A stretch of 64,000 nt of DNA from Octopus sinensis (Eukaryota). The notes under the pieces were generated by a model that was not told the origin of the DNA, did not search any database, and saw only the letters and a program-made list of their open reading frames with translations. Shown piece after piece: positions 6,651 through 61,027 of the stretch; the first letter of the stretch is position 1; every line of letters starts with the position of its first letter. Position numbers and translations under genes: made by a program. The stretch spans positions 122,140,001 through 122,204,000 of the forward strand of contig NC_043001.1 of NCBI RefSeq assembly GCF_006345805.1, given 5' to 3'.

Positions 6651-6656
6651 TTTATT
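6651..6656 (-). promoter_or_regulatory. Candidate poly(A) signal AATAAA for CYBC1-like gene
   Basis: First AATAAA I found on the minus strand after the stop (~180 nt downstream); others lie further down (e.g. ~6244). Confidence 0.3.
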
Positions 6657-6836: not shown

Positions 6837-7035
6837 TCACATCTTGTACATATTTTCTGTATTTGCTGCAACACTTGAACTTTCAGGCAGAACATATTGT
6901 GGACCGATTTGTTCGAAACTATCCTCGGATGATGAACTGTCTCCAAGATAGTCATCCCCATCATTTGGGTCATGGTGATGATTCAGGTCTACTTCAAGGA
7001 AATCTTGGATTTTGTGAGCAATAGCATAGTGATCA
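6837..7035 (-). CDS. CYBC1: CYBC1-like terminal coding exon, 199 nt (S-DHYAIAHKIQDFLEVD...NMYKM*)
   Basis: long U tract + ggcag| acceptor; TGA at 6839-6837; overlaps ORF 6837..7091. Confidence 0.88.
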
Positions 7036-10000
7036 CTGCCAAAAAGAAAAAAAAAAAATAGTTTCTTTACTACCCACGAGGGGACAAACAAATGGATTAA
7101 GTCGATTATATCGATCCCAGTGCGTAACTGGTACTTATTTAATCAACCCCGAAAGGATGAAAGGCAAAGTAGACCTCAGCGGAATTTGAACGTAGCAGCA
7201 GACGAAATACCTATTTCTTTATTACCCACAAGGGGCTAAACACAGAGAGGACAAACAAGGACAGACAAACAGATTAAGTCGATTATATCAACCCCAGTGA
7301 GTAACTGGTACTTATTTAATCGACCCCGAAAGGATAAAAGGCAAAGTCGACCTCGGCGGAATTTGAACTCAGAACGTATGACTTACAAAATAAAACTTTT
7401 TTTCCACTACTACCTACCTCCTCAACAATTGCTACCACCAGTGAATATACAATCACTCTTAATCTGTAACATAGGAATATAGGACTCTTCTTTATTTTTC
7501 TTTTCCAACTATCTCTACTTGTTTCAATTATTGGACTGCAGCCATACTGAGGTACCACCTTGAAGGGTTTTCATTGAACAAATCAACCCCCAGCTGAAAT
7601 CTAGTTCTGATTATATGAGCCTCTATTGACGAACTGCAAAATTGCAAGGATGTAAATATAGGCACTGGTGTACCTGTGTGGTTGCTTTCCAATGAGTTCA
7701 GTCCCACTGCATGCCACCTTGGGCAAGTGTCTTCAACTAAAACCTCAGGCTGAACTAGTGCAAGGATTTGGTAGACAGAAACTGAAAGAAGCCTGTCGTG
7801 TGTGTGTATGTATATATATATGCATATATATACATAAACGATGATACCTATGCATATATATACATATGCATATATATATATGCATATATATATGCATATA
7901 TATATATATGCATATCATCGTTTAACGTCCGTTCTCCATGCTAGCATGGGTTGGACTATATATATGTATATCTATATATAAGCATATATATATATATATG
8001 CATATATCATAGGCACAGGAATGGCTGTGTGGTAAGTAGCTTGCTTACCAACCACATGGTCCCAGGTTCAGTCCCACTGCATGGCACCTTGGGCAAGTGT
8101 CTTCTACTATAGCTTCGGGCTGACCAATGCCTTGTGAGTGGATTTGGTAGATGGAAACTGGAAGAAGCTCATTGCATATGTTTATATATGTATGTCTGTC
8201 TGTTTGTCCCACCCGCTGCTGCCAGCATGGAAAGTGGTTGTTAAACGATGATGATGATGATGAAAGAAGCAATAAGGTGTTCAATGAATTGGTCATACAA
8301 TAACAAACCTGCTGTCTCCTATTGTAAAGGATTCTGTGATACCAATTATAGCACCAGCTGCCAAAAGAACCACCACCTGGTTTCCTTTACCAAGGTATTT
8401 CATTTCCCTTTCTTCAACGCGTACACCAACAATGTCGTCTAAGCTGGCTTTCACTGGAAATAAGACAATAACCAATGAAACTCTTGAAACTGCACGTTTC
8501 CATGTCAGAGATAAATGATAAGATATTAATTACCAAGATATCAATTACCAAGATATCAATTACCGAGATATCAATTACCGAGATATCAATTACCGAGATA
8601 TCAATTACCGAGATATCAATTACCAAGATATTAATTACCAAGATATCAATTACCAAGATATCAATTACCAAGATATCAATTACCAAGATATCAATTATCA
8701 AGATATCAATTACCAAGATATTAATTACCAAGATATCAATTACCAAGATATCAATTACCAAGATATCAATTACCAAGATATCAATTACCAAGATATCAAT
8801 TACCAAGATATCAATTACCAAGATATTGGTAACCAGAGTGACTAACCAGTCAGTTGGAACCCTATCCATCAATCCATTATCTTCACCCACTATTTCAGGG
8901 AGGCATTGTTGGGGTAGAGTCCTCAGGCACCCCCTCCATAGAATCCCGTAAGATCAGCCATGATCACACGAGAGCATGGATGTTATCCAACCATTTTGTT
9001 CTTGGTCTACTCCTAGGTTTCCTGCTGGTTGAAGAATCCATCTGGCAAGTCTTTCCTGTGACAGTCTAATCACATGTCCATAGTACTGGAGCTGTGCCTT
9101 CTCAATACAGAGACTTAACCTGGCTTAACCTCAAGAGACTCCTTGGTCTCTGAGCTACATATCCTGTCAAGTAAAATTACACCAAAGATCGTTTAGAGCA
9201 ACCATCCATCAGATGGAACTAACAAATATACTTTTCATCACTTATACGACAAACATGACAGAACTAGTTCAGATGAGTGATAGATTATTATAGGTTTGTG
9301 CTGAGTAAAAACAGTAGGAAAATACTGGAAGATTAAGACTGCAGGATAAGAAATATCAGTCTCAGGAAAGAGTTAAGAATATACAGGGTTGGCCAAAAGT
9401 CACCCGACAGTAAATCAAAATTCCATAAATACTATCTGTAATTCTGTATTGACTCGGATGGTAAAATGTGTCACTGTGCCGGTGGCATGTAAAAAGCACC
9501 ATCCAAACATGGCCGATGCCAGTGCCGCCTTGACTGGCTTCTGTGCCGGTGGCACGTTAAAAGCACCAACCGATCATGACCGATGCCAGACTCCCCTGGC
9601 ACCTGTGCCGGTGGCACGTAAAAAGCACCCACTACACTCGCGGAGTGGTTGGCGTTAGGAAGGGCATCCAGCTGTAGAAACACTGCCAGATCAGACTGGA
9701 GCCTGGTGCAGCCTCCTGGCTTCCCAGACCCCAGTCGAACCGTCCAACCCATGCTAGCGTGGAAAACGGACGTTAAACGATGATGATGATGATGAAGAAG
9801 GACATCAGTTTGAACAATTTTCATGATGTTTCATATTTAGATGCTCTTATTAAATTCATTCAGTTGTCAAACATAAATTAATCTTGGAATTAATTGGTTT
9901 TTACTTACTGTCAGGTGGCTTTTTGGCCAACCCTGTATATCTTAGAATGATGTACTTAGATTAGAAAAGAAAAGAAAGTACTATAATAATAAGAATCCTT

Positions 10001-13000
10001 TCTACTATAGGCACAGGGACTGGAATTTTGGGAGAGGGGGGCTAGTCAATTAGATTGGTCCCAGTATGCAATTGGTACTTATTTTAATGACTTTGAAAGG
10101 GTGAGTAGCATCTTTGATCTCAGCGGGATTTGAAGTCAGAATATAAAGATGGATGAAGTATTTTATCCAGGATACAAATAGTTGCCACCTTAATGACAAT
10201 AATAATAATAATAATAATGATGATTACTTACCAACATGTTGTTTGAGCAGTGGGTGAAGGAACCGTTGTAGAAGACTTCGCTTTTTGATGGTCAGCAGTC
10301 CAGTTGACTTCTCAAATATACAGTCCTGATAAAGAAGACAGATCATGTACAGAATATTTTTCCTTTTACAGGGTAATGGATTGCCAAAATCAGCAGAGTG
10401 ATAAAAAAGATGTCCTCCTCCTCCGCATCATCATCATTTAACGTCTGTTGTCCATGCTGGCATGAGTTGGACAGTTTGACTGGGCTGGCACTCTGTAAGG
10501 CTGCACCAGGCCCCAATCTGATTTAGCATGGTTTTCTACAGCTGGATGCCCTTCCTAACACTAACCACTCAGCAGAATGTAATAAGTACTTTCATGTGCC
10601 ACCAGCATGTGTGTCATTTCTGTGACACTGGTATCTTGTCACGACTACGATTTTGCTCGGCTTGGTGGGTCTTCTTCTCAAGCACGTCATACTGTCAAAA
10701 GTCTTGGTCATTGCTGCTGTGAGGCCCAACACTCGAAAGGAACTCGGCCATTTTGCCTCCACAAGGCCCAATGTTTGAAAGGAACTCAACCACTTTGCCT
10801 CTGTGAGGCCAAACTCATGTAATATCTAATTTCAAATCTTTACATGCTGAGTTCAAACCCTACCAAGATCTACTATGCTTTTCATCCTTTTACGGGTTAA
10901 TAAAATAAGTGGCAGTTGAGGGCTGGGATCAGTAGAATCAAAATCCTTTCGTATTTCTATAATTAGATATTATAAGGAATTGTATAAAAATTGTTTACTC
11001 TTTTACTTGTTTCAGTCATTTGACTGTGGCCATGCTGGAGCACTGCCTTTAGTCGAGCAAATTGACCGCAGGACTTATTCTTTGTAAGCCTAGTACTTAT
11101 TCTATCGGTCACTTTTGCCGAACCGCTAAGTTACAGGGATGTAAACACACCAGCATCGGTTGTCAAAGCAATGTTGGGGGGACAAACACAGACACACAAA
11201 CATATACACACACACATACATATATCTACATATATACAATGGGCTTCTTTCAATTTCCGTCTACCAAATCCACTCACAAGGCTTTGGTTGGCCCGAGGCT
11301 ATAGTAGAAGACATTTGCCCAAGGTTCCATGCAGTAGAACTGAACCCGGAACCATGTGGTTGGTAAGCAAGCTACTTACCACACAGCCACTCTTTAAAAA
11401 AGATTTTGTGAATTGTAAAAGTATAAACAATGTATTATACATAAACTTCACAGGTCTGAAACGCCATTTTTCTTGGCCCTAGAAAAAAATTACTGTAGGC
11501 CACCAAAAATCTTATATGGACTACCAGGATCCACATGAATCCTGGTTGAGAACCCCTGGTCTAAATAATTATACAACCTTAGTAATAACAACTCAGCCAA
11601 GGTATTAAATAAATATTCTTAACTCTGTAAAGTGATTGGCGTTAAGAAAGGGATCCTGCCATTTGACACTGTGCAAAAATAGACAATTGGGGCCTGGAGC
11701 AGCTTCCTGGCTTCCCAGCTCCTCTCAAACTGTCCAGCTTATGCCGGTATAGAAAAACGATGTTAAATGACGATGATGATGATGAAGAGGTGGTATGGCT
11801 TTGTGGTTAAAACGTTTGCTTCCCAGCCACATGCTTTGGGGTTCAGTCCCACTGTGGAGCTTCGTGCAATTTTCTGCAATAACACTGGACTGAGTAGATT
11901 TGCAAGATGGAAACCGAGACAGGCCTGTTATTCATTCGTTCATAAATGCATGCATACATACATTCACACACAATGCAGTATCTATATATGGACGGCCAAT
12001 TAAAGGAACAAACTGAATTAAAAGCGGTTTTTCTGATGAAAATTAAATTTGCATCATGAGCTGGGATAAAACATAGGAATTTGATACCAAACTAGCTTAA
12101 ATTTTCTCCACCAACTATAAAACCGCATAATAAATATAAGTGGCTGGGAGAGCTTGTACACAATTCACGTAGCTTGAAAATTTTGCATATTTTACATAGA
12201 AAAAAAAACATTATTCATAGTTTTTGCAAGAAAAATGAAACTGGATCGACAGAAACAAGAAAATGTTGAAAAAAGCCACAATCGTACCCACACACAGAGA
12301 TTCCTATAGTAAGGGAGGTAATCGCGGTTGAAATGTGTAAGAGTGCTTTCCCTTTACACACTAACATCCGACATTTTGGCAGATTTGAATGTTGTGTATC
12401 GGATCACAGTTGTTATTCACGATAGAAATTGGTCTTCCAGAAAGCGGTGTGTGTTTATAACACGTGAATCACAAGGCTAAAGGTTACTTCGGGGTACCGC
12501 AGTGTTTAGCCTTTGTTTTGCATCTCTTCAACCGATTAATTTCACAAGAGGCCGAGCTAAGGACATTCACTTTCGAGGTACTACTAGCGTAGTCGCGCAT
12601 CCGCGTTAGCTAGTCATGACTAGTCGATACTTACTGTGTGTTTTTGTGTGTTATTTACTTTGATTAAAAAACTATTTATTGTGTGTTTTTGTACTTTATT
12701 TACTTTCTGTAAAAAAACTATTTACTTTGTGTAAAAAAAATTATTCATTTTGTGTTTTATTTACTTTGCTAGGTAGTCGTTGTAGGATCGACTAGTCACG
12801 ACTAGCTAGCGCGGATGCGCGCACCGGGACCACTATTCGCTAGTTGTACCCACTTTCGAATCTACCAGAACGAATTAACAATGAATAGCTACGTTATTTG
12901 GATTCTCACAGTTCTGCGTGCATCCCATGAATAATTTGTTTGCTGATTCTTATAAACAAAAACTCGGTCCAGTGAAGCTCTCAACTCTCCTTACACAAGC

Positions 13001-16000
13001 GAATCACGTATTATGAACACCCGTCATTTCCACGGAGGGGATATTGTCCGATAATAACGGCAATCAGAAATTTAACGTCTAAATCTATAAAAATATTTTG
13101 AGATTAAAATACGCTTGTCGTCAAAGGGAAAGCACTCTTACATATTTTAAACGCGTTTGTCTCCCTTTGACCAGAAAACTTGGAAGTAAGCCTGTTCATC
13201 CACGCAGCTAAGCCTGCCGTAAGAGAACGTTAAATGAAAACTGGAATATCTCTTAGAGGATTACTCATTTACTTGTTTCAGTCATTTGACTGCGACCATG
13301 CTGGAGCGCTGCCTTTTAGTCGAGCTGGGATAAAACATAGGAATATACACATTAATGATAATGATGACACATACACACACACACACACACGCGGCCAGAG
13401 TTAATGGTTTCTTAGACTGGTTACCTGAATGGCATTTGGCAGTGGTGTCCACAATGCTTGCATTAGCTATTCAGATGAATGCTTAACTCTTTAATATTAA
13501 AATCAGCCACATCCGGCCAATGGCATGAAAAACTGTTAATCCAGATACATTTTCATCCTCTCTCCATTGTTTTTCTCTCTCTCTTTCCTCAATCCTTTCT
13601 GTCAAAGAGAGTAGGCTCAAAACGTCTAAGACTTTTCCATTTTCCCAGAGTATCAAACTAATACACCTTCTATACTTAAGAGATGAGGAATTATGTACAT
13701 TATTTACATTTGATGGATATTTGTCCTCATCTTGTTTGCTGTTAACACAACGTTTTGGCTGATATAGCCTCCAGCCTTCATTAGGTGTCTTGGGAAAATT
13801 TCGAATCTGGGTTCTCATTCAAAATGTATTTTTCGATGTTATTATTATCATTATTAATATTTAGATCACTGCTTGGAATCGAATGCGGAATCTTGGGGGT
13901 TAGCAGCCCGCGCACTTAACCACTACGCCATATGGAGGGTATATCAGCCAAAACGTTGTGCTGAGGACAAATATCCGTCAAATGTAAATAATGTAATACA
14001 CCTTGTTTGTTATTCCTTTACTTGTCTGTCTGTTGTACATTTGAACAAAATATTCTACTTGTTTTATGTGCAAACCAGCCAGATCCAGCCTCTCACACCT
14101 ACCCTACAGCGTAATTTCCAAAAATATGAAATCACCTTATGAAAACCTTGAAGCTACAAGATAATCCATGATTAACTTAAAACAATGTGAATAAATAAGC
14201 ATTACATTTGACAGAGTAACCTGAATGCTTATGGGTTAAATAGCTAGAAAGACTCTACCACAGTGTAACTGTTTCAGTTCCAACACAGGGTTCCTAACCA
14301 AATTACTTACCAAGCGATGAGAACACAGAAGTCTTGTGCAAATAAGTTTACGACAGAAAATGAAAATAATGAAAAGCAAAGAGAAAAAGGTATGATAAAA
14401 ATAAGAGAGTTAATGTCAACTAACCTCCCAATCTTCCATTGCAGTGAGACCGAGCAGGAGAGCTCCCAATAACCAAAAGATCTTCCATAAAAAGTGATCT
14501 GGGGAAATAATAAATTCTACAGATTTATCGAAATACAACAGAGGTACATCTATGTATCAATCATTATCATCATCATCATTGTTTAACGTCCACTTTCCAT
14601 GCTGGCATGGGTTGGACGATTTGACTGAGGTCTGGCGAACCAGATGGCTGCACCAGGCTCCAATCTGATCTGGCAGAGTCTCTACAGCTGGATGCCCTTC
14701 CTAATACCAACCACTCCGAGAGTGTAGTGGGTGCTTTTATGTGCCACTGGCACGAGGGCCAGTCAAGCGGTACTGGCAACAGCCACACTCAAATGGTGCT
14801 TTTTATGTGCCACCTGCGCAGGACCCAGTCCAGCGGCACTGGCAACGACCTCGCTCGAATGTTTTTTCACGTGCCACCAGCACAAGTGCTAGTAAGGCGA
14901 CGCAGGTAACGACCACACACGAATGGTGTTTTTAATGTGCCATCGGCATGGAGGCCAGCTTGTTGCTCTGGCCCCAAGGTTGTACAGTACAGCCAATGCT
15001 TATTTGTAAATGAGTCTGGCTTGGTAACATGCTTTTGCTAATTGTTTTAAGTGCCCGTGAAGTCATGAGCAGACACAGACACCTTTGTTGGCCCCTTGGC
15101 CATTAATCCTGCAGAACATAAAGGATTTTACAACTGAAGTGAGGTTGGGCTTCACCAGCATACAGCTGGTACTCAGCACAGCTAGGTTAACTGGAGCTGC
15201 CTGGTCTAGGAATTAAATCTAAGACATGACCATCACAAACGAGAACCTTAACTCCAAGACCATCCACTTCACCACATATTGTAGAATATTCTCTAGATAT
15301 TCTCTAGTCAAGAGAGCAAGTGGATGCTGATGGGTGAGTACTGGGGTTATAATTTGTAGAATGGTGCTATAGAACAGTGATAGTATCTGGGAGAGGGGTC
15401 TATGAAGGAGAAATGTAGGTTGTAGAACATTCTATAGATGTTGTTGTTTAGCCATAGGCTGCCACTGACCCAGTAGACTTATGGTCAGAGGCTTTCTAAC
15501 CTTGACTGTCCAAGTATTTCATCTGGCATTATACACCACAGACTACATTATCAAATGTGTCCTTTTTCAAAAAGAGTAGGATAAGATTTAGTTACTGCTT
15601 CTGTTTGGTTGCATGACTACTTCAAGGTACCCTAGTAGTAGTAGTAGTAGTAGTGGTGGGTCATCAGCAATATTATTATCAATAAAACTATGTCAAATGA
15701 ATTGTTTAAAAATATTAATCTGGAACAAAATAACTAACTGGCTTAATTAAAAAGTTTGGACCATGACCAGTTAATTAGTCTTGCTAATTACCACTTTAAT
15801 TATATTTACTACAGAAGGGCAGCGAGCTGGCAGAAACGTTAGCACACCAGGCAGAATGCTTAGCCGTATTTCGTCTGTCGTTACGTTCCGAGTTCAAATT
15901 CCGCCGAGGTCAACTTTGCCTGTCATCCTTTCAGGGTTGATAAATAAAGTACCAGTTTCGCACTGGGGTCGATGTAATCGACTTAATCCGTTTGTCTGAC

Positions 16001-17517
16001 CTTGTTTGTCCCCTCTATGTTTAGCCCCTTGTGGGCAGTAAAGAAATATATATTTACTACAGAACAATGAAAAGTTTCAAAGATATTAAATTTATAGTTT
16101 GAAGGTTGAAAATATGACATACCTGAACCATAGTAAATTGCTCCTATACCACCAGTAATCACACCTGCAAATGACAGCAACATAAATGGGTTGTTTGTAT
16201 TAAAAAGCAGCAATGTGACATGTAAAAAAATTATTTCGTTTTGACTGCATATATAATTGTAACATTTTCTCATATGAGAAATATTTAGAAAGAAATCCAT
16301 CCATCCTTCATCTCTACATGCTATTCTTGGGATGGTTGTGGAGGTAGGGTCCTCCGGCACTTCTTCTATAAGGTTCTATCAGAAGCAACATTCATTACAG
16401 TTACTGGCTGCATTCCCAAATGTGACCAACTCAAACAATGGAAACTATCAAACTGGTATTCTTTCGATAGGAGTCCCACTTACGTCACGTGTATTTGTTT
16501 ACATTTGAAGAAGAAGTTCGTCACTTTCGGTAAAATTTTTATTTTTTTATATATGTGGGGTTAGGGTTAAGGTTAGGGTTGGGGGGGAGGGTATCTTTTT
16601 TCTTCAGAAATGTAAATAAACCCACGTGGGTTTATAAGTGACAGCTATGTTACTAGTAGCAAATGATCGCCTATCAAACCTTCATACCTTAGGTCTTCTG
16701 CTGCTCGGACAGGCTTGGCTTGGCTTGGCTCGAAGCATGCATCTTGTGGTTCTTTCCAGCAACATTCTAATCACATAACCACATACTGAAGCCGAAGCAG
16801 ATTAAACCTAGATCCTGTTTTAGGTGATGTGGTTACTGGAGGTTAACACAAAGTCAGTCAAGGTGTTTCAGTAGTGGCCTTCTTGTATTTTTGCATGGTC
16901 AAGACTAAATTACCCACTGATAATTTAGTTGCTGTTTCAAGCATGTCAAGAGACTGCACTGATGTTCTTGCTACTGCTGTTTATCGTGAAGTCAGGCCTG
17001 ATTGAGTAGACACCATTCTGTCTTTTTCAGTAACCCTAATTACACAAACGTTTTGAACTTCCCTCTTCTTCCCCATCCTCACACAAATTAACTATTTGAT
17101 ACCAAATCCTTACTCAGTTGCATTTAGGATTCATCAGTTCAACATCCTGCTATGTCCTCTCCTTAATATTGCTACAACAATAACTGCAGCCCCTCTGAAC
17201 TTGCAGACTGCATTTTACACCCTTTCCCTCTCTGCTTGTGATATTTCAATTTCTCAACTTCAAGCACTTTATTCAAACCTTTTCTAAGAAGAGAATATCT
17301 CCAAAGGACAGAAACCAGGAATCAAAGTTAGAAGAATAAGATAAAAAAGAATAAGAAAATAAGGAATTTTAATGAGTTAACTCCATTAATTTTTAAGTAC
17401 AAAGATCATAAATAATAAGTTTAATTTACCAAAAAGCAAACACCAAGACCAGGAATTTGGTTCTCGACACAAGTGTAGCTTATCAGCGGTTTGTTCTTTG
17501 ATCTGCATATACACCAT
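6837..17517 (-). CDS. CYBC1: Cytochrome b-245 chaperone 1 (EROS/C17orf62) homologue; join(17517-17430,16164-16123,14498-14425,10325-10232,8453-8309,7035-6837) = 642 nt, 213 aa
   Basis: All six exons have GT-AG ends and splice into one open frame: MVYMQIKEQTADKLHLCREPNSWSWCLLFGVITGGIGAIYYGSDHFLWKIFWLLGALLLGLTAMEDWEDCIFEKSTGLLTIKKRSLLQRFLHPLLKQHVVKASLDDIVGVRVEEREMKYLGKGNQVVVLLAAGAIIGITESFTIGDSSDHYAIAHKIQDFLEVD...ENMYKM*. Collinear with human EROS as recalled (MYLQVETRTSSRLHLKRAPGIRSWSLLVGILSIGLAAAYYSGDSLGWKLF...EDWEEAIFDKSTG...VEEEKVRYFGKGYMVV). Confidence 0.93.
8309..8453 (-). CDS. CYBC1: CYBC1-like coding exon 5, 145 nt (V-KASLDDIVGVRVEEREMKYLGKGNQVVVLLAAGAIIGITESFTIGDS-S)
   Basis: ttatttccag| ... 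|gtttgt; overlaps ORF 8293..8475. Confidence 0.9.
8521..8827. repeat. 15-bp minisatellite (AGATATCAATTACCA)~20 in CYBC1 intron
   Basis: Direct reading; variant units TACCGAG and GATATTAAT. Confidence 0.95.
9384..9935. mobile_element. Tc1/mariner-type MITE with a nested family-C SINE
   Basis: TA|CAGGGTTGGCCAAAAGTCACCCGACAGTAA ... TTACTGTCAGGTGGCTTTTTGGCCAACCCTG|TA; TA TSD. Confidence 0.85.
10232..10325 (-). CDS. CYBC1: CYBC1-like coding exon 4, 94 nt (DCIFEKSTGLLTIKKRSLLQRFLHPLLKQHV-V)
   Basis: ctttatcag| ... |gtaagt; IFEKSTG matches human IFDKSTG. Confidence 0.9.
11000..11395 (-). mobile_element. CORE-type SINE 'family B', near full length
   Basis: GGCACCTTGGGCAAGTGTCTT CORE-like block, internal (TA)(TG) microsatellite, GTAAAAGAG tail; other copies 22265-22740, 26465-26820, 36985-37250, 38418-38735, 47580-47975. 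Confidence 0.85.
12311..13168. mobile_element. Long foldback element with diverged terminal inverted arms
   Basis: AAGGGAGGTAATCGCGGTTGAAATGTGTAAGAGTGCTTTCCCTTT mirrors AAAGGGAAAGCACTCTTACATATTTTAAACGCGTTTGTCTCCCTT; inner arms ~12450-12475 / ~12998-13020 also pair. Confidence 0.7.
12577..12850. mobile_element. 274-bp MITE with 9-bp TSD (MULE- or Merlin-like)
   Basis: TSD CACTTTCGA at 12568-12576 and 12851-12859; TIR GGTACTACTAGCG / CGCTAGTTGTACC; 34-bp subterminal IR with 2 mismatches. Confidence 0.85.
13640..14000. mobile_element. Penelope-like pLTR fragments in inverted arrangement with a decayed hammerhead-like motif
   Basis: Minus 13784->13751: CTAATGA-AGGCTG-gaggctatat-CAGCC-AAAA-CG; an inverted partial copy lies at ~13932-13995. 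Confidence 0.5.
14425..14498 (-). CDS. CYBC1: CYBC1-like coding exon 3, 74 nt (D-HFLWKIFWLLGALLLGLTAMEDWE)
   Basis: atttccccag| ... |gttagt; second hydrophobic segment followed by the conserved EDWE. Confidence 0.9.
15817..16048 (+). mobile_element. Family-A SINE with 16-bp TSD
   Basis: TATATTTACTACAGAA at 15801-15816 and 16049-16064. Confidence 0.9.
16123..16164 (-). CDS. CYBC1: CYBC1-like coding exon 2, 42 nt (G-VITGGIGAIYYGS-D)
   Basis: tttgcag| ... |gtatgt; phase 1-1. Confidence 0.9.
16476..16640. mobile_element. Small foldback/MITE with internal TTAGGG-like repeats
   Basis: CACGTGTATTTGTTTACATTT vs AAATGTAAATAAACCCACGTG; GGTTAGGGTTAAGGTTAGGGTT inside. Confidence 0.55.
17430..17517 (-). 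CDS. CYBC1: CYBC1-like coding exon 1 (MVYMQIKEQTADKLHLCREPNSWSWCLLF-G)
   Basis: ATG at 17517-17515; donor G|gtaaat; an acceptor ttttacag| lies 27 nt upstream of the ATG (exon starts at 17544), so a 5'UTR exon exists further upstream. Confidence 0.9.
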
Positions 17518-18009
17518 TGTTAATCCAGAAAAGTTCTATGGCTACTGTAAAAAAAAAAAAAAGAGATAAAAATATAGAAAATAATTTTCAAGGTAAAAAG
17601 TTGTTTATATTTCTGCTATGGTTGTTTAGTAGGACAAAAAGCAAAAGCTGAAAATCTAAACAATTCATCAAGCAGACTTCCATATAAAAAGCAAACCAGG
17701 AGAGACCATTCCACTTTTTTCCCAGACAGTGAACCAACAGTACATTATCCAGTGGGGTCCTTCCATTTTTAAGATGATGGGAACATAAAATGATAATGAT
17801 GTACAATGAATGTTTTTCACAATTGTAGTGTGGTTTGAAACTTTCTCACTGAAATATTGTCTTACCAATGCTGCCAGACCTTAAACTGACTAAAACACAT
17901 TGTTTTAGAGAATTAAAGGGAATTTAGAAATCTAAGTGGTTTCCTCAATCAGCACTCCTGCAAATACAGGCTAACAGAACATATAAGTGGATGGCTTTCC
18001 TTGCAGGAA

Positions 18010-30794: not shown

Positions 30795-33700
30795 CATAAA
30801 ACTTAGATAAAACTTAGATATGTTTCGACCAGAGATTGGTCCAGGCCATGTCTAACTTAATAGCACCACCTGATAGGATTATTCGAATCCTGTTTGTTCA
30901 AGTAGTGAGTTCTTGTTGGGTGAGTTGTATCCAATTATGGGTGGCTTGTCTGGTATTCTTTGAAGGAATCTATCCAGACTCTGTTTGAAGTTGATGGGAT
31001 CCTTTTCCTCTTTGATCTCCCTCGGGACAATGTTAAATAGGGCAGGGCCTGTTGAGGAAAAGAAATTATGTTGCAGTGTACATGTATGTTGTGATCTTGA
31101 ATTTGGCAGGGGACGTATAGCCCGTGGTCCAAGTCTCGGATGAACCTTGAAGCTAATGTTTAGGTCGTTTGGGCAAAGTTGGCGGTATATTTTCCACATC
31201 GTACAAATGATGTACCGCTCACGGCGACGCTGGAGGGAGTAAAGTTTCAAGGCTTTAAGGCGATCCCAATAGTCGAGAGCAGCCATGCCTTCAATTTGTT
31301 TAGTAAGAGCCCTCTGGGGTGACTCAATTCTGGAGATGTTTTGTCTTGTGTGAGGAGACCACAGTGGGCAGCAGTATTCAAGGTGTGGCCGTACAAAGGA
31401 TGAAAAAAGTGGTATGATGACACCTTGCTCTCTGGACCGGAAAGTTCTTAAGATCCAGGAACTCATCCTACGAGCTGTATCGACCTTCTTGTTGATGTGT
31501 GCACTCCAACTGAGATCGTCATCAACAATTACACCCAAGTCTCTGATATTGTTAGAGGCTGTGAGCAGTTCCCCTGAAGGAAGAGAGTATGGTTGTTTTA
31601 GTGAGGAATTTCTTCCAAAATGCATCAGCTCAAATTTTCCCTCATTCAGTTGCATTTTGTTTCTGTCTGCTCATTGACTCACAGCATATAGGTCAGACTG
31701 GAGTTGAGTTCGGTCTGCTTCTTCATTGACGATTTGCTGGAGCTTAGTGTCATCAGCGAATATTTTCACTTTGCAGTGATGTACGACACTGGAAAGGTCG
31801 TTTACATAAATTATGAAGAGTAGCGGACCCAAACAGTTCCCTGGGGAACACCGCTGGTGACTTTTGCTGGGTTTGAGTGGACTCCATCAACTACAACATG
31901 TTGTGTGTTCTATTCGCTAGGAAATACTGAATCCAGTGTAGAACTTTTCCACGGATTCCACATTTGCCAATTTTGAGAGTAGGATGTTATGGTCTACCCT
32001 GTCGAACGCTTTACTGAAGTCAAGGTATATGACGTCAGAGTTCGAACCTGTTCCCAAGGCTTTGAGTACATCTTCAATGTGGTGTAAGAGCTGTGTTAGA
32101 CAGTCCCTGCCACAGCGAAAGCCATGTTGATTTGAATTTAGGAGTTTGTGGGTCTCCAGGAAGTCAGCTATCCTTGATCTTAACACTCTTTCAACACTTT
32201 AATGATGTGGGAGGTGAGTGAGATTGGGCGATAGTTGACTGCGAGGGATCTGTTTCCCTGTTTGAAAACCGGGATGACCGACTGGGATAGAAACTTTTTC
32301 GGTATATAACCTGCGTCTAACGAGTTTCTCCCAGAGGTTGGTCAGAGGGAATGCAAGTTGATATCTACATTCCTTCAGGAGACTGGCGGGAAATCTATCA
32401 GGGCCTACAGCGGAGTAATGTTTGACCTCATTTATTGCTGCTACGATGTCGGTGGCAGTGAAGGTTATGTCTGCGATTTTGTGTTGGGAGTCAGCTTCGT
32501 TCGTTTCCCTCACATCAATATCAGTGGGAACACTGAAGACAGAGCAATATGTTTCTGCAGTATTTCTGCCATTTCTTTAGCATCGTGTTGGGGAATGCCG
32601 TTTTCATCAATCAATGGCCCAATAGGTGAGACAGTGGTTCTATGCTTATTTGCATAAGAATAGAACACTTTTGGGTTCTGTTTGATGTTTTTGATTACCC
32701 ATTGTTCCTCCACAGCTCTTTGATTTTCAATGGAGGTTTTCATGTTAGTCTGCAGATGAAGTTTTTCCAGCTCTAGTCTTTTCATTGTTGTTGAATGTGG
32801 ATGTTGCGTGTGGGAATATTTTAATTGGTTGATTTTTTTTGTTGAGTCTTTTGATGCGCCTGATGAGTGTTTTTTTTTTTTTAGGGAGCCGGTTTCTGTT
32901 TGTGTTAGTAGATTTCTTGGGAGCGTGTTTAGAGCATGTGTCGGTGACAATGGTTTCAAAGTGCTGCCACGCGGTCTCAATATGAGGGGAATTGAGAGTA
33001 AAAGACCAGTCGATGGAAGACAGATCCTTTCTGATTGTTCCCCAGTCCGCTTTGTGGAAATTTATGTTGTCAAATGGGTGCCATGGAGTGGGATTGGCTG
33101 GTTTGGTTTTTATACGTCGGGAATTAAGATTGCAGAGTACCATGTCGTGGTCTGAGAGGAGAGTTTTTTCGACTGAAATGCTGTGAACGTAGCTAGAGTG
33201 ATTGGTCAGTACCAGATCCAAGATCGTTTTATTCTGTCTCGTTGGTTCAAGCACTAGCTGAGTCAGGAATACTCATCCATCAGATTAAAGAGCAGTTCTG
33301 CTGCTGCCCTATCTGATGTAGAGCACTTGCCTAACTTCGGTATTTGTGGGCCAGTTCACATGAGGGAGGTTAAAATCACCCATCACACTATTATGTTTCC
33401 GGAGTGGTACTTCCGAAGGAAGGACTTGACTTTGCTAAGGCACTCTTCAAAGTACTTTAGAGGTGCCTGGGGAGGCCTGTAAAGACCAACAATGGTTATG
33501 TCCTTGGCTTTGTTGTATACTGATACCGATTCACAGTAGCCATTGGAAAATGTGTCCTTGGCATCAAGTGAAAAGGAGTCATGGATAAAGATGGCTGTCC
33601 CTCCCTTATTTCGGTCTGTGCGATCCGCACGAACAATGGTGAAATCTTTTTTTTCACCTCTGCGTCCATATGGGTGTTGTTCAGGTGAGTCTCGGTAAGG

Positions 33701-34160
33701 ATAAAGAAAGGGAAGCAATGTGCCATTTCGGCAAGCCAACTCTCTATATATGGGATCTTCCATTTTTGGGCAATAATTGATGGGTTGATGCCACGTACAT
33801 TTAACAGGAATGTCGAGGTAAGGGAAGTTGGTAATGGGTGAGTGGTCCTTGTGATTTGCATAGATGGTTGGTGATGGCTCGCTGGATCTCCTGGCTTAGG
33901 TCGGCCTTCATATTTTCCAGGTATGTCAGTAAAAAAGCCTACGCATACCATTACTTTCGAGCTTTTCTGATGATTGCCGAGATTTTCCTCTGGATAGTAA
34001 CTGGCCGTTATGAAAATTTATTGTTGTGGTTGCTATTGTTGTTGTTGTTTTACTTCTCAGAAGGTTCGTTCTGCTTGTTTTGGTAGATTCTGTGCAAGCG
34101 GACAGCAGCTTGCTATCAGAGGTCTTACAGGGTTTCTTTCCGTAAATCATAAGCTTTGAT
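30795..34160 (-). mobile_element. CR1-clade LINE: ORF1 end, APE endonuclease and RT, disrupted
   Basis: LLNVRGIN..ILTETHL (APE); NQHGFR, YLDFSKAFDRVDH, GVPQG, KIFADDTKL (RT); RPHLEYCCPLWSP, LYSLQRRRERY; 3' tail (TATCTAAGTTT)2 at ~30798-30821; several frameshifts. Confidence 0.92.
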
Positions 34161-39856: not shown

Positions 39857-40345
39857 CATATGTTTGTGTGTCTGTGTTTGTCCTCCCAGCATCGCTTGAC
39901 AACCGATGCTGGTGTGTTTACGTCCCCGTAACTTATCGATTCGGCAAAAGAGACCGATAGAATAAGTACTAGGCTTACAAAGAATAAGTCCTGGGGTCGA
40001 TTTGCTCGACTAAAGGTGGTGCTCCAGCATGGCCACAGTCAAATGACTGAAACAAGTAAAAGAGTAAAAGAGAAAGAGTACTATGTACATTAGACACCCT
40101 GATCTTTGAGCTACGCATCCTGTTGAGTATCCTACAAAGGAAACTCATTTTTGTTGCTTATATTTACGATCGTATTCTTTCAGTCACTACCAACATTCGT
40201 GACCAAAGGTGAGAATAGGCAAGGAAACCGATTTGAAGATAGCAAGTTGCAGTCCGCAAATCTTTCTGAAAATTGACTCACTAAAAAGAGAAATATTTTT
40301 TTTTTTTAAAAGGAGTTTTTAAAGCACTTCCACCAAATCCCTATC

Positions 40346-40388
<43 letters not shown>

Positions 40389-43300
40389 AACAACAACAAT
40401 AACAAAAACGGCAACAACAGAACTTACCTATGCAGTTACGAGGCCCTGCTGAGAATGGTATAAAGGCATGCGGTGACCTGTCGGTATCTTCTAGAAGAAA
40501 TCTATCAGGATCGAATGTGTCTGGGTCTGGAAAGTTTTGGGGATCTCTATGTAGAGAAGAAATCACTATTGAGATAGGAGTACCCTTCTTTACTTCATGA
40601 TGACCTGTAAATATAATTTCAGCATTTTGAATCTTAATCACTACAATGTAAGATTGGTTTCAGATTTTGGCACAATGCCAGCAATTTCGGGGGAGGGTTT
40701 AAGTGGATTAAATCTACCCCAGTGCTCAACTGGTACTTATTTTATGGACCCCGAGGGGATGAAAGGCAAAGTCGATCTCAGTGGAATCTGAGATTTTTTT
40801 ATGTCTGGATGAAAGACAAAATGATCATGGCTGGAGCGCTGTTCAATCAATGCTGACTTGAAGTTTAAGCCACATCATAATCATTTGAAATTTTCGCACA
40901 AAGCCAGCGATTTCGGGCAAGATGGTAAGTCGATTACTTCAACCCCAGTGTTTAACTGATACTTATTTTATCGACCCCGAAAGGCAAAGTCAACCTCGGC
41001 GGAATTTGAACTCAGGGCGTAAAGACGGACGAAATGCCGCTAAGCATTTTGCCCGGCGTGTTAACGATTCTTCCAGCTCGCCTTAAGCCACTTCAATGAT
41101 GATTTTAGCACAAGACTAACAATTTCGAAGAGGGGATTCATCGATGACTTTGACCCCAGATTTTAACTGGCACTTACTTTATCGACCCCGGTTTCAACTT
41201 GAAAGAACAGGCCTATCATCAAATGCTTTTCAAACCTGACCGTTTCATCTCCTCTATATCTCTGACTATATTGATCATTATGTCATTACTTTAGTTAAGA
41301 ATGTGGGATGTGATTTGAGTTATATTTGGCTGTTGTTACTGACTTATCAAACCACCTCACTGGGTTGCCATTCGTGGTTATTCATCATCATAAGAAATAA
41401 ACTTACCAATTTTGAAATCCTCAGCAGACACACGTCCAATTATTGGTACAGATGGATAAAGACGTTGAACCTCCTTAAACAAAAAACACAGTAAATATTA
41501 TTTTCAATTTATTATTAAATAATAAAGTATTTCAGCTCTTAACTTCATTTTTGTAGATTTATGTAAAAAGTCCTTAACAGCATTTATTGAATAAGGTGAA
41601 ATAAACTCATTCAAGCGTTACTACTCTTCAATGTAAACTTAGCCTCTTATCCCTCGGAATTGAAAAAAGAAAGTACCAGTTAAATATTGTGGGCGATCTA
41701 ATCGACTAACACCGACTCGTAACTTCCCGGCTTTGTAATTCTGTGAGAAATTATTGTTGTGTGCAGGGTGGATCCGACTAACGTTTGAGTCCATCGTGAA
41801 AATTGTCACGTTGTTTTGATTTGGAGAGAAAGTTTAAGCTGTCTTCCTTTGTTTGATGGCTTTCGTGAAAGAGATTTGAAAGGGGCGGAGTCTGGTTCAG
41901 ACAAGATGGTTAGAAACGGACCGGAAAAAGTTGTTCTTGAAAGGTCAGGAGGAAAAGTATAATGCAGACACTGATGATCTCGTTATGCTGTCTCTAATGA
42001 TGCGCAGGAGCGCAATGAGAGTGATGTAGCTACAGAAATATTTAATGACGACGAAGAAAATGAGAATTAACAGTTGTGGTATCTGTCTTGCAACATGTCT
42101 CTCCGCAGCTCGTGTCTTTGACAGAATTGCAATCATGGGTCAAACGTAGAGCAAGGTTGAGCGTTTGTGATCTAAAATGTTGTGAGGATAGCACTGCATT
42201 TTTGCCATCGAGATAGTAGAGGGTCTAAACAACAATAGGAGGACATATGAAATTCCCCAGAACTTCTCTACTTCTTCTGAATATCGTACAAAAAATTACA
42301 CTATTTTACCCAAAATTGTTTTCTTTTTTCATTCATGACAATAAATCGCATGCGACAAGATCTCAAAATGGTTTGAATTTCGAACTTCAAAACCTGATTT
42401 TGCTACCAGTTTCTTTGGGTTCTAGTTCGTATTTTATCTCTGACAATCTTCAGTCATATATTAATAACCAGACTTCATATTTAAGATACAGAAAATAGGA
42501 ATGATTATACTATTTCAGTAATGTCTATTAGTTTAACGGTTGAACTGGTACTCCGTCGGTAACGAAGACGAGTGTGATATTTGATCCAATCAACGGATCA
42601 ATCTGCTCATAAAATCGATGTATAAGCGGCTGAGCACTCTACTCTCACGTGTGCCCTTAAAGTAGTTCCCACGTAGATTCAGTGTGACACAAGATGTAAC
42701 CAGAGTGGCTACTTCGAATTACAGGTACAATTAATTTTTGCCAGCTGAGGGGACTGGAACAATGTGAAATAAAGTGTCATGCTCAAGGACGTAACGCTTA
42801 GAATCGAACTTACTGCTTAGAATCGAACTTACGACCTTACGATCGAGATCAGAATACCCTAACCAATAAGCTACACACCTTCACAGTTTAACAGTTGTAT
42901 CTCTTATTATAAAAGGCAGATTTTATCTGCCTCCCTTTGTCAGTTATAGAAATCTACAATATAGGATTTCTTCAATTACAATTTACCTAGCATTTTTAAG
43001 AGTAGAATGCATCGGGTTTTGCCAGGTCCAGTTTTTAAAATTTAAACTCCAATTAAGCAAAATTTACAGAAAACTCACATTCTGGTGTGTATGTCAAATG
43101 CTTTTCTTAGTCTGGTTTACAGCACACGCAAACGCACACACACAGTGTGCAACGAATAAAGTGAAACTAGATGTAATATTTGTTTCTGTCTATCACGCTG
43201 ATAGATACATGAGTAAAATGTATGGCAAGCTAACAGATAAGGGTGAGTGAAAATGTTCTTGGAAGAGAGTAAATAGCGACAGAGTGATTTGAGGAAGACT

Positions 43301-51406: not shown

Positions 51407-54400
51407 GTAATAATAATAATAATAACGAACAAAATATGGAACAAAGCCGTAATAGGCAACAAGAAAACATCCAGGCAGAAGATACAGAAAAGGACAGGCA
51501 AAAACAAGGACGGGTTATTCGGAGCTTTTTTTATCATCAGTCGAATTCCAGATCATCGTTGCAGTTTCGCCGGTTACGCACAAGACTGCTCCAATCTGGC
51601 CAGTCCCAAGAAAATTCTAAGATAAGAGCACTAGATCCTTTGAAAGAAAGCAAGCGAATGTATAGGAAATCAAAGACGAAAAAAATTGAGTAATGGTACA
51701 TAATTACAAATACAAACAACAGATCTCTTTCGACTGAGGACGAATTAAATTAAGCTGGCGTGTTACAACGGGAACATAGGAGATGAAAGTCATGGGAAGG
51801 AATATAAGAGGATGCTACACGGATGGTAGTCGAATCAAGAAAGGGCAGTTTTGGAAGAACACTGATCACGTGGAAGGAGAGGAAAGAGGTAGGGGGCAGA
51901 GGGATTGAAGAATTAGGGAGGGACGAGAAAGAGAGAAAAAGAAAGGAAAGGGACAGAGTGAGGTAAAGCAGGAGGAAAAGTGGTGAGAATGAAGCGAAAG
52001 CCAAGAAATGTGAGAGAGGGTGAGCGAGGAAAAGAAAAGTGGAAAGAACGAAACAAGTGTGAAGAGGGCTAAAAGAAAGAGTAAAAGAGTTAAGCGTTGC
52101 CGAAAAGTAACGTTGTTTTTTTTTAAGCGATAGTGCGGCTTCATACCACAGATTGTTTACGAACCGAATAAAAAGTGTCCGAATAATCAGCATAAAGTAG
52201 TAAGCACATTAATGTGGCTATATGATATGCGTGCATATGTTCTGTCTGATATGTTTTGGAAGACAAGGACTTTAGTGAGCTGCACATTCGGCATGGCATG
52301 CTTTACGAATCTCGTAAAGGCAACAGTGTATCATGTGCTAAGGAAAACATAGGTACTTTATATCCTGATGGTTTGAGTATTCGAAAATGCGAAAGGTGGT
52401 TTAAAAAATATATTAAAGAAGGAAATTCGAACTTTTGGATAAATATCAATCTGTTAGAAAAACCATCCGTTTTCACTAATGACACCGTAATTTTAGCAAC
52501 TGAGGACGTCGAGCGTCAAAGTATTTATTTCTTTATTACCCACAGGGGGCTAAACATAGAGGGGACAAACAAGGACAGACAAAGGGATTAAGTCGATTAT
52601 ATCGACCCCACTGCGTAACTGGTACTTATTTAATCGACCCCGAAAGGATGAAAGGCAAAGTCGACCTCGGCGGAATTTTAACTCAGAACGTAGTGACAGA
52701 CGAAATACTGCTAAGCATTTCGTCCGGCGTGCTAACGTTTCTGCCAGCTCACCGTCTCCTCACGCGTCAAAGTATTGACTTTTCCCGGAGGTTTAGTAAT
52801 CCTCGGTCCACAGTGCAAAATTAGCTGAAATAGGTTGAGAAAGTCTATACAGAAGAGAAGCGGGTACCTCATGTACTCTTCTTAGACTTTCACGTATTCA
52901 GATCATTCGAACATTCACAATTATGGGCGATACCAATATGGCATTATAAACATTTTTATTTTCTAAAGAAACTTCATATTTTCCCCCAGGAAAACTCGTT
53001 TCGTGGTGAGTTAATTGTTATTGCTAACAATGATGACTATCTCTTGAATGAAGAAATGTATTAACGATACGTATTATACTTATTTGAAATGCATTATTTT
53101 TCTGTACCTCTAATACATACATACATACATACATACATACATACATACATACATACATACATACATACATACATACATACATACAAGCATGTATGCATGC
53201 ATGCATACATACATACATACATACATACATACATACATACATACATACATACATACATACATACATACATACATACATGCGTACTTACATACATACATAT
53301 ATGCATGCATGCATACATACATACATACTTACATACATACATACATATATACATACATACATGCATGCATACATACATACATACATACATACATACATAC
53401 ATACATACATAATACATAAATACATACATACATACATATATACATATATACTTACATGCATACATATATACATACATATATATACATGTATATATAAAAA
53501 ATACAAAATGGGACAAGAACGCAAAACATCCAAAACATACAAAAAGGTATAACAAAACATCCAGATAGAGGATACAAAGAAAACAAGGACAGGTCATTCG
53601 AAGTTTTCTTTCCACAGTCAAGTTCCAGATTATCTTTGCAATTTCGGCTGGTTATACTCGAGATGGCTCCAATCTGACCAACCCCAAGGAAAAACTAAGA
53701 TAAGCGCGTTAGATTGCTTGGCAGAAAACAGGGACGGAAAAATAGGAGAATGTTATACAAATACAAATAACAGGACATACATACATACTTACATACACAT
53801 ATACATGCATACATGCATACATATATACTTGCATGCATGCACACACACACACGCTTCGGTACTTTATTGTTTATTAATCTTGTATTAATTTACATGTGTA
53901 TATATTACCGAGGTACGTGTGCATGCTCGTGTACGTGTATCTTTTTATGTCCGTTTTGTAAGTTTGTCACAGCAATTTATTGCTATACCTACTTAAGTGT
54001 ACGAGGGGCGTTCAATAAGTAATGTCTCTGGCCCACTTGCAGCTTTTTGATTTAGCTGAAATTTTGCATGTGCAATTATTTATTCCTCTATAGATTAAGT
54101 GGGAAATTACAGCTCTGAACTAATTGTGGTTTCTGATTTACATGTGTTTGAACTGAGTCAAGTGTGAAATGGAGACTGTTGAGTGTCGAACAGTGATCCG
54201 GTTTTTGTATTTGAAAGGACGCACACCACGGGAGACTTTTGCTGAAATGAAAGTAACTTATGGTGATGATGCCCCATCATATGCCCTTGTAAAATGCTGG
54301 CATCGTGAATTCAAACATGGTCGGAACTCTGTGGAAACAGCTCCCAGATCTGGTCGCCCCACTTCTGCCATTGATGAGGTATCTGTCCGTCAAGTTGAGG

Positions 54401-60386: not shown

Positions 60387-60464
<78 letters not shown>

Positions 60465-60760: not shown

Positions 60761-61027
60761 CTGAAAATAGCAATCAAAGAATAACACTTGAATATTTCAT
60801 TAATTTTAAGGAAGTTTTATAAATAGTTATTTTTTCGAGAAATAAAATAACAGCAACTGGAAAATGAAAATCATAAGTCGCAGCTACTTTTGTTCTATTG
60901 ATGTTCTCGTTTTTGTTAGTTCCCCCTTGCCAGAACTGATTAAGTAGATTCATGGCCAAAAGCATTCAAGCGTTGATCAAACAATTTGGGTTTAAGGACT
61001 CCTAACTTCCAGCTCGCATCTTTAACC

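Follow-up and report, generated by a model that had tools for sequence, protein, structure and literature searches.

EROS, the product of CYBC1 (C17orf62), is a helper protein on which mammals depend for building the NADPH oxidase that kills microbes; it binds and stabilizes NOX2/p22phox in the endoplasmic reticulum, and the respiratory burst is lost without it. The human protein has been described as a pleckstrin homology (PH) domain split by a transmembrane (TM) hairpin, with helices H1, H2, H3 and H4 at residues 21–40, 47–61, 85–93 and 147–161, respectively (PMC11161758). The protein binds NOX2 via H1, H2 and its beta-strands, with Arg118 and Tyr119 of loop 2 placed against the inner heme, and it clashes with the binding of flavin adenine dinucleotide, keeping NOX2 protected and inactive (PMC11161758). 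Here, we analysed a stretch of 64,000 nt from Octopus sinensis (contig NC_043001.1, positions 122,140,001 to 122,204,000; hereafter the window, whose own numbering is used for all coordinates), the composition of which is eukaryotic and AT-rich (GC 0.31–0.44), with a high density of dispersed repeats. A sequence-only reading had assembled on its minus strand a complete gene of six small exons, located between positions 17517 and 6837, and had assigned it to CYBC1/EROS. Our analysis indicates that this gene is almost certainly the single-copy O. sinensis orthologue of CYBC1/EROS.

Identity and fold of the octopus protein

The spliced octopus protein matches the Pfam family PF15169 (Cybc1_Eros) with 128.6 bits (cut-off 27; E = 3.2e-37) over profile positions 1–172 of 185, and the profile of this family picks only 292 proteins among 1.84 billion. 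Among the sequences of the Protein Data Bank (PDB), the protein matched a single entry, the NOX2-p22phox-EROS complex 8KEI, through its human CYBC1 (E = 1.3e-33; octopus residues 2–163 against human 1–163); this chain (D) is approximately 40% identical to the octopus protein over residues 2–163. In the protein database, 14 of 14 matches carry PF15169, and those that have been named are CYBC1 or C17orf62. The comparison of the spliced protein with CYBC1, by sequence and by profile, thus returned CYBC1 for all best matches and no competing family. The two proteins have in common the EDWE motif, the signature [KR]-Y-x-G-K-G and Gly133. They differ by one additional N-terminal residue in octopus, by a one-residue deletion in exon 4 (88 and 94 nt in octopus versus 85 and 97 nt for exons 1 and 4), and by a tail that is 26 residues longer in octopus and carries DDYLGDSSSSEDSFEQI.

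The AlphaFold2 model of the octopus protein, built from an alignment of 18 sequences, has a mean predicted local distance difference test (pLDDT) score of 77.8, reaching approximately 87 across residues 1–165. As in CYBC1/EROS, two antiparallel TM helices interrupt a PH-like beta-sandwich, and a short H3 and a C-terminal H4 follow. In addition to the beta-sheet, the elements are strands at residues 5–9 and 13–18 and helices at residues 22–41, 46–63, 86–90 and 147–167, and the hydropathy maxima lie around residues 31–34 and 53–58. In a Foldseek search of the PDB, the top match was 8kei_D (E = 4.5e-16, TM-score 0.82, root-mean-square deviation 3.1 Å), followed by PH domains at E values of about 0.02. 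The order of strands, TM helices, H3 and H4 is the same as in human EROS, in agreement with the earlier description of a two-TM protein collinear with it. The Pfam match, the sole PDB match, the database relatives and the superposition of the fold on chain D of 8KEI all support the identification as CYBC1/EROS.

Chloroplast Ycf4, a photosystem I assembly factor, has been named as the plant orthologue of EROS (PMC13296129). The likeness to Ycf4 is a functional analogy, both being small two-TM membrane proteins required for the accumulation of a redox membrane complex; no Pfam match of the octopus protein to Ycf4 (PF02392) was obtained, even at E ≤ 1, and no relationship is detectable at the sequence level.

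Exon–intron organization

The coding sequence (CDS) comprises six exons of 88, 42, 74, 94, 145 and 199 nt, adding up to 642 nt and encoding 213 aa in an uninterrupted frame. Coding exon 1 (17517–17430, minus strand as for all exons; 88 nt) begins with the ATG at 17517–17515 and ends at the donor G/GTAAAT (the slash marks the exon boundary); it encodes residues 1–29 and the first base of Gly30, thus the N-terminal beta-strands and the beginning of TM helix H1. The remainder of H1 (VITGGIGAIYYGS) is encoded by exon 2 (16164–16123; 42 nt), whereas TM helix H2 and the invariant EDWE motif lie in exon 3 (14498–14425; 74 nt), which ends in phase 0. Exon 4 (10325–10232; 94 nt) encodes DCIFEKSTGLLTIKKRSLLQRFLHPLLKQHV, corresponding to the first beta-strands after the TM hairpin and the short helix H3, and exon 5 (8453–8309; 145 nt) a long beta-hairpin with loop 2 (EMKYLGKG). 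Exon 6 (7035–6837; 199 nt, including the TGA at 6839–6837) encodes helix H4 and a disordered, acidic and serine-rich tail. All ten splice sites are canonical, with GT at every donor and a pyrimidine tract and AG before each internal exon, and the intron phases after exons 1 to 5 are 1, 1, 0, 1 and 2. The numbers given in the sequence-only reading (213 aa, five exon sizes of 88/42/74/94/145 and their phases) could all be reproduced. An open frame of 111 aa at 13486–13818 (minus strand), whose translation includes ISLILWENGKVLDVLSLL, was considered as exon 4 and rejected, since it lacks an AG/GT pair in phase and a stop codon interrupts one of the candidate frames.

At the 5′ end, an acceptor-like T12-ACAG is located at 17545–17560, 27 nt upstream of the ATG, which fits the outer coordinate of 17544 that had been proposed for the gene. 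The sequence at 17518–17544 (minus strand) would accordingly be the 5′ untranslated region (UTR) portion of the first coding exon, and at least one upstream non-coding exon, hence a spliced 5′ UTR, is probable. A similar pyrimidine tract and CAG occur in the Argonauta locus, 7 nt before its ATG. The existence of three RefSeq products with one protein sequence would fit alternative UTRs. On the other side of the gene, the first AATAAA after the stop codon, at 6651–6656 (minus strand; 180 nt downstream), is a candidate poly(A) signal by pattern. Intron 4 harbours a very regular tandem repeat of a 15-bp unit (AAGATATCAATTACC) at 8520–8826 (20.5 copies, 96% matches), which ends approximately 67 nt before the acceptor of exon 5.

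To compare this organization across species, exon maps were derived from exact spliced alignments, each annotated protein being aligned to its own locus. Besides octopus, the comparison included the cephalopod Argonauta, the gastropod Gigantopelta, the chiton Liolophura, the marmoset, whose CYBC1 (187 aa) is 97% identical to the human protein and served as its proxy, and the toad Bombina as second vertebrate. The coding exons measure 88/42/74/94/145/199 nt in Argonauta, 88/42/74/94/145/163 nt in Gigantopelta and 88/42/74/94/145/211 nt in Liolophura, versus 85/42/74/97/145/121 nt in marmoset and 85/42/74/97/145/145 nt in Bombina. The five introns fall at alignment columns 30, 44, 69, 101 and 149, with phases 1, 1, 0, 1 and 2, in six of six species belonging to two superphyla. 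An N-terminal insertion of one residue accounts for 88 versus 85 nt, and an indel of one residue within exon 4 for 94 versus 97 nt. The human exon sizes previously deduced from the octopus gene (85/42/74/97/145) match marmoset and Bombina exactly, marmoset standing here as a primate proxy for the human locus; through the same proxy, human CYBC1 has its five introns at the same positions and in the same phases as octopus.

Annotation status and distribution of the family

The gene had been presented as hidden. This holds for a prokaryote-style track of open reading frames (ORFs), but not for RefSeq, which already contains the identical protein and CDS span. XP_029636487.1/88/89, annotated as 'cytochrome b-245 chaperone 1' of Octopus sinensis, are 100% identical to our protein over all 213 aa, and the existing gene call on CM016863.1 (GCA_006345805.1) has a CDS span of 10,681 nt that corresponds to 6837–17517 here, so that the window would lie at about 122,140,001–122,204,000 of CM016863.1. 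The NCBI annotation pipeline calls three transcripts for this gene. The orthologue of Octopus bimaculoides, XP_014780050.1, clusters with the O. sinensis entries at 90% identity; its initial name was 'uncharacterized protein C17orf62 homolog', and it is now also called 'cytochrome b-245 chaperone 1'. Three octopod species share the product length of 213 aa. For O. sinensis, the gene was thus already known and named, as was its product.

The family extends from sponges (Amphimedon, Sycon), Capsaspora and a choanoflagellate through to vertebrates, with further members in an annelid, oysters, horseshoe crabs, a starfish, a hemichordate and amphioxus. This is in line with the earlier remark that the gene family is not new in invertebrates, since orthologues are annotated from sponges to vertebrates.

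Sites of human disease variants

Two positions of human CYBC1 known from chronic granulomatous disease (CGD) can be located in the octopus gene. In the literature, c.127 (NM_001033046) is the site of a missense/splice variant found in a CGD patient, p.Asp43Asn with a retained intron, and c.6C>G (p.Tyr2*) is an Icelandic founder allele. Marmoset coding exon 2 (L002 2320–2363) ends in GTGGAG/gtaaag, so that c.127 (85 + 42) is a G that closes the exon and opens the Asp43 codon. It is homologous to G16123 of octopus, with which exon 2 ends and a split GAT codon (Asp44) starts. The split Asp codon at the exon 2/3 junction, with its G at 16123, was therefore found as first described, and its correspondence with the CGD splice variant agrees with both the literature and the end of marmoset exon 2. 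The change published as 'c.127 A to G' must be G>A on the coding strand, since it replaces Asp43 by Asn and the reference base of primates here is G. As the five introns are conserved from molluscs to primates, c.127 is the last base of an exon whose end molluscs and vertebrates have in common; this boundary probably dates back to the ancestor of both.

The N-terminal Tyr (human Tyr2) is likewise kept, as had been noted, and is invariant in the 18-sequence alignment; it is residue 3 in octopus because of the one extra N-terminal residue. Tyr2* being a nonsense allele, the conservation of this Tyr carries no mechanistic weight for the disease.

The NOX2 interface and possible clients

By homology with human 8KEI, octopus CYBC1 would be a small chaperone of the endoplasmic reticulum (ER) membrane in which two antiparallel helices form a membrane hairpin that interrupts a PH-like beta-sandwich; the hairpin and the beta-strands would bind a newly made NOX2-type flavocytochrome. 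The Lys/Arg-Tyr pair of loop 2 would be inserted towards the inner heme, and the chaperone would stabilize the NOX2-p22phox heterodimer and keep it inactive until release. Several observations are consistent with such a mechanism. Lys118-Tyr119 of octopus corresponds to the heme-contacting Arg118-Tyr119 of human EROS, [KR]-[YF] being present at this position in all 18 aligned sequences, and Gly133 is likewise conserved in all 18. In addition, a mollusc, Lottia, has genes for NOX2-like, p22phox, p47phox and p67phox proteins (PMC2121648). A CYBC1/EROS orthologue acting as chaperone of a NOX2-type flavocytochrome is, in our opinion, very probably the best overall explanation of the locus. We have moderate confidence that the protein would serve as a NOX2 chaperone in octopus itself, a role proposed by analogy. 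The ER location, the client (a NOX2-like oxidase and possibly P2X-type receptors) and the tissue (haemocytes) are also suggested by analogy.

Other data weigh against this explanation. Among the 16 named NOX2-contact residues of human EROS, only three are identical in octopus (Y119, A131 and G133) and about four are conservative (W52, K118, A132 and E140). Polar contacts are mostly substituted between the two proteins (for example R22W, N62A, R108V, E115R and R129L); R22 is changed to W, R108 to V or I and R129 to L in all molluscs, and N62, also replaced in all of them, is variable. Furthermore, NADPH oxidase is not mentioned in the searchable literature on cephalopod haemocytes, and searches for cephalopod NOX2 or for 'cytochrome b-245' in octopus returned nothing relevant. 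Finally, the expression of EROS in mammals is broad, and the protein has control over purinergic receptors as well, according to the title of a paper cited as reference 15 in PMC13296129. The sequence-only reading had inferred a dedicated NOX2 maturation pathway in cephalopod haemocytes. Because of the broad expression of mammalian EROS and its control of purinergic receptors, the presence of the gene implies neither 'dedicated' nor 'haemocyte'.

The same data could be accommodated by a genuine EROS-family gene whose main octopus clients are other than haemocyte NOX2. In one variant of this alternative, the octopus protein would act in general chaperoning or quality control in the ER, with other multi-pass proteins as its clients (P2X-type channels or additional NOX/DUOX enzymes, for instance), and its expression might be broad. 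The loss of most named polar contacts, the regulation of purinergic signalling by mammalian EROS (as given by the title just cited) and a cephalopod literature in which the searches revealed no link between haemocytes and NOX2 would all fit this view, as would the strongly conserved additional tail motif described below, which is not present in tetrapods and suggests additional partners. However, the loop-2 Lys/Arg-Tyr pair, the TM hairpin and the beta-sandwich, which make backbone contacts with NOX2, are conserved. Moreover, the EROS family occurs in lineages for which NOX2-like and p22phox genes have been reported, including a mollusc, and Monosiga, another choanoflagellate, has both. We thus regard other main clients as a serious but rather unlikely alternative. 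The substitutions indicate that the interface has either co-evolved with its client or differs in detail. We read this as the same NOX2-chaperone mechanism operating in octopus with a co-evolved interface, a reading based on the aligned residues that leaves space for different or broader clients.

A conserved motif in the C-terminal tail

The tail of the octopus protein contains the motif DDYLGDSSSSEDSFEQI at residues 175–191 (6956–6906, minus strand), with the core S-F-E-Q-I at residues 187–191. The motif is almost invariant in nine mollusc sequences of three classes (cephalopods, gastropods and a chiton). Its core recurs as EEDFEHV in oysters, NESFEHI in an annelid, EDDFEQI in Bulinus and DDEFEQL in a catfish, as well as in several transcriptome proteins. 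The sampled tails of mammals, birds, reptiles and amphibians contain the acidic-serine part only (LSQSSDSEA...), without the core of the motif. Matches to the pattern [DEST][DEST][FWY][DEVTQ]x[ILV] were found in 35 of 206 tails of the family, as compared with 2.65 ± 1.5 (maximum 7) in shuffled tails. In the AlphaFold2 model, the pLDDT drops to approximately 45–60 in the tail and to approximately 45–52 in the blocks spanning the motif, which corresponds to a disordered region modelled with low confidence.

The segment SSSSEDS-F-E-Q-I (residues 181–191) follows the rule for LC3-interacting and FIP200-interacting regions (LIR/FIR): an acidic residue or phospho-Ser, then W/F/Y, two residues of any kind and L/I/V, with acidic or Ser residues ahead of this core, in a disordered region. 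A LIR/FIR peptide of optineurin, SSEDSFVEIRMAE (SSEDSFVEI), has been described together with the LIR/FIR consensus (PMC7946963), and seven of its nine positions are equal to those of octopus SSEDSFEQI; this is a resemblance only, in an unrelated protein context. We found no paper linking CYBC1 to a LC3-interacting region. It is tempting to suggest that the tail of non-tetrapod EROS is an ancient, phospho-regulatable LIR/FIR-type motif with putative ATG8/FIP200 binding, a proposal drawn from sequence resemblance that we consider speculative and, on balance, improbable. Alternatively, the motif could be a CK2-type acidic sorting cluster or bind another partner. It is the only part of our findings that may be new.

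A different conserved C-terminal element, PGF-x-G-[WF]-LE-x-x-L-x-x-x-FR, was observed in the choanoflagellate Salpingoeca kvevrii (P0207) and in three further representatives of the family (P0238, P0271 and P0272). This end, probably an amphipathic helix, replaces the acidic F-E-x-I tail of animals.

Selection and integrity of the gene

The octopus protein shares 82% amino-acid identity with that of Argonauta hians. The comparison of the two genes gave pN = 0.097 and pS = 0.633, hence an omega of approximately 0.07, a ratio that is approximate as dS is near saturation. Apart from dispersed repeats, the only sequences that blastn aligned with the Argonauta locus were coding exons 1, 2, 3 and 5; the exon 1 region is conserved at 81% over 116 nt and the exon 5 region at 82% over 162 nt, while exons 4 and 6 fall below the blastn threshold at the DNA level. 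The introns are unalignable, and blastn against this locus revealed neither conserved non-coding sequence nor an upstream UTR exon. The octopus CYBC1 gene is under strong purifying selection.

One could still imagine a decaying or unexpressed pseudogene that is intact in appearance only. Against this, the reading frame is undisrupted and none of the ten splice sites departs from the canonical form; dN/dS is about 0.07, and the sequences that align with Argonauta are four of the six coding exons and dispersed repeats, not the introns. Furthermore, the length of the protein is maintained in the three octopods, and the NCBI pipeline has called transcripts for the gene. A pseudogene is thus extremely improbable. 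A chance string of short ORF pieces resembling EROS, in favour of which only the small size of the exons could be cited, is refuted by E values of 1e-33 to 1e-37 and by the matching exon sizes and phases in five other species.

Repeats and neighbouring elements

A dispersed repeat resembling a short interspersed element (SINE) occurs in both orientations in the window, with a recurring translation that includes HLPKVPCSGTEPGTMWLVSKLLTTQP. Its sites are located at approximately 7920–8170, 9474–9830, 10427–10535, 11299–11480 and 14560–14790, with many more past 20 kb, and pieces of it also match the Argonauta locus at non-orthologous positions. When the entire window was scanned with Rfam at gathering thresholds, nothing was returned, so that this repeat has no tRNA or Rfam match there.

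Two cytochrome P450 exons (PF00067) are present on the minus strand at 40309–40659 (E = 5e-23), with the heme-binding signature FSAGPRNCIG, and at 60295–60816 (E = 2.7e-10). They indicate a neighbouring minus-strand P450 gene of at least 20 kb with introns filled with transposons. Between these two exons sits a non-long-terminal-repeat retrotransposon (56876–60185, plus strand) with a reverse-transcriptase ORF of 452 aa (RVT_1, E = 1.1e-25) and flanking ORF pieces. A mariner/Mos1-type transposase remnant at 54157–55001 (plus strand; HTH_48, E = 1.7e-9; Transposase_1, E = 3.5e-23) is probably frameshifted and dead, as it is split across two reading frames. Finally, long ORFs, the longest of 263 aa, follow one another at 30882–34017 on the minus strand and resemble the endonuclease or reverse-transcriptase tail of a long interspersed element; two pieces of this stretch were searched and gave no Pfam match at E ≤ 0.01.

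Concluding remarks

As the gene, its product and its name are in RefSeq for O. sinensis, the biological addition made here is small. The sequence-only reading nevertheless assembled a six-exon gene with exons down to 42 nt and correctly predicted the exon sizes of primates. The comparison across species reveals that CYBC1 has kept all five coding introns in position and phase from molluscs to primates. The tail motif of invertebrates and fish provides a concrete hypothesis for a function of EROS that is missing in tetrapods. If the motif binds ATG8 or FIP200, EROS would link the chaperoning of NOX2 to the autophagy machinery outside tetrapods, for instance through an ER-phagy-type turnover of unassembled oxidase or a tie to LC3-associated phagocytosis, and tetrapods would have lost the autophagy link of EROS.

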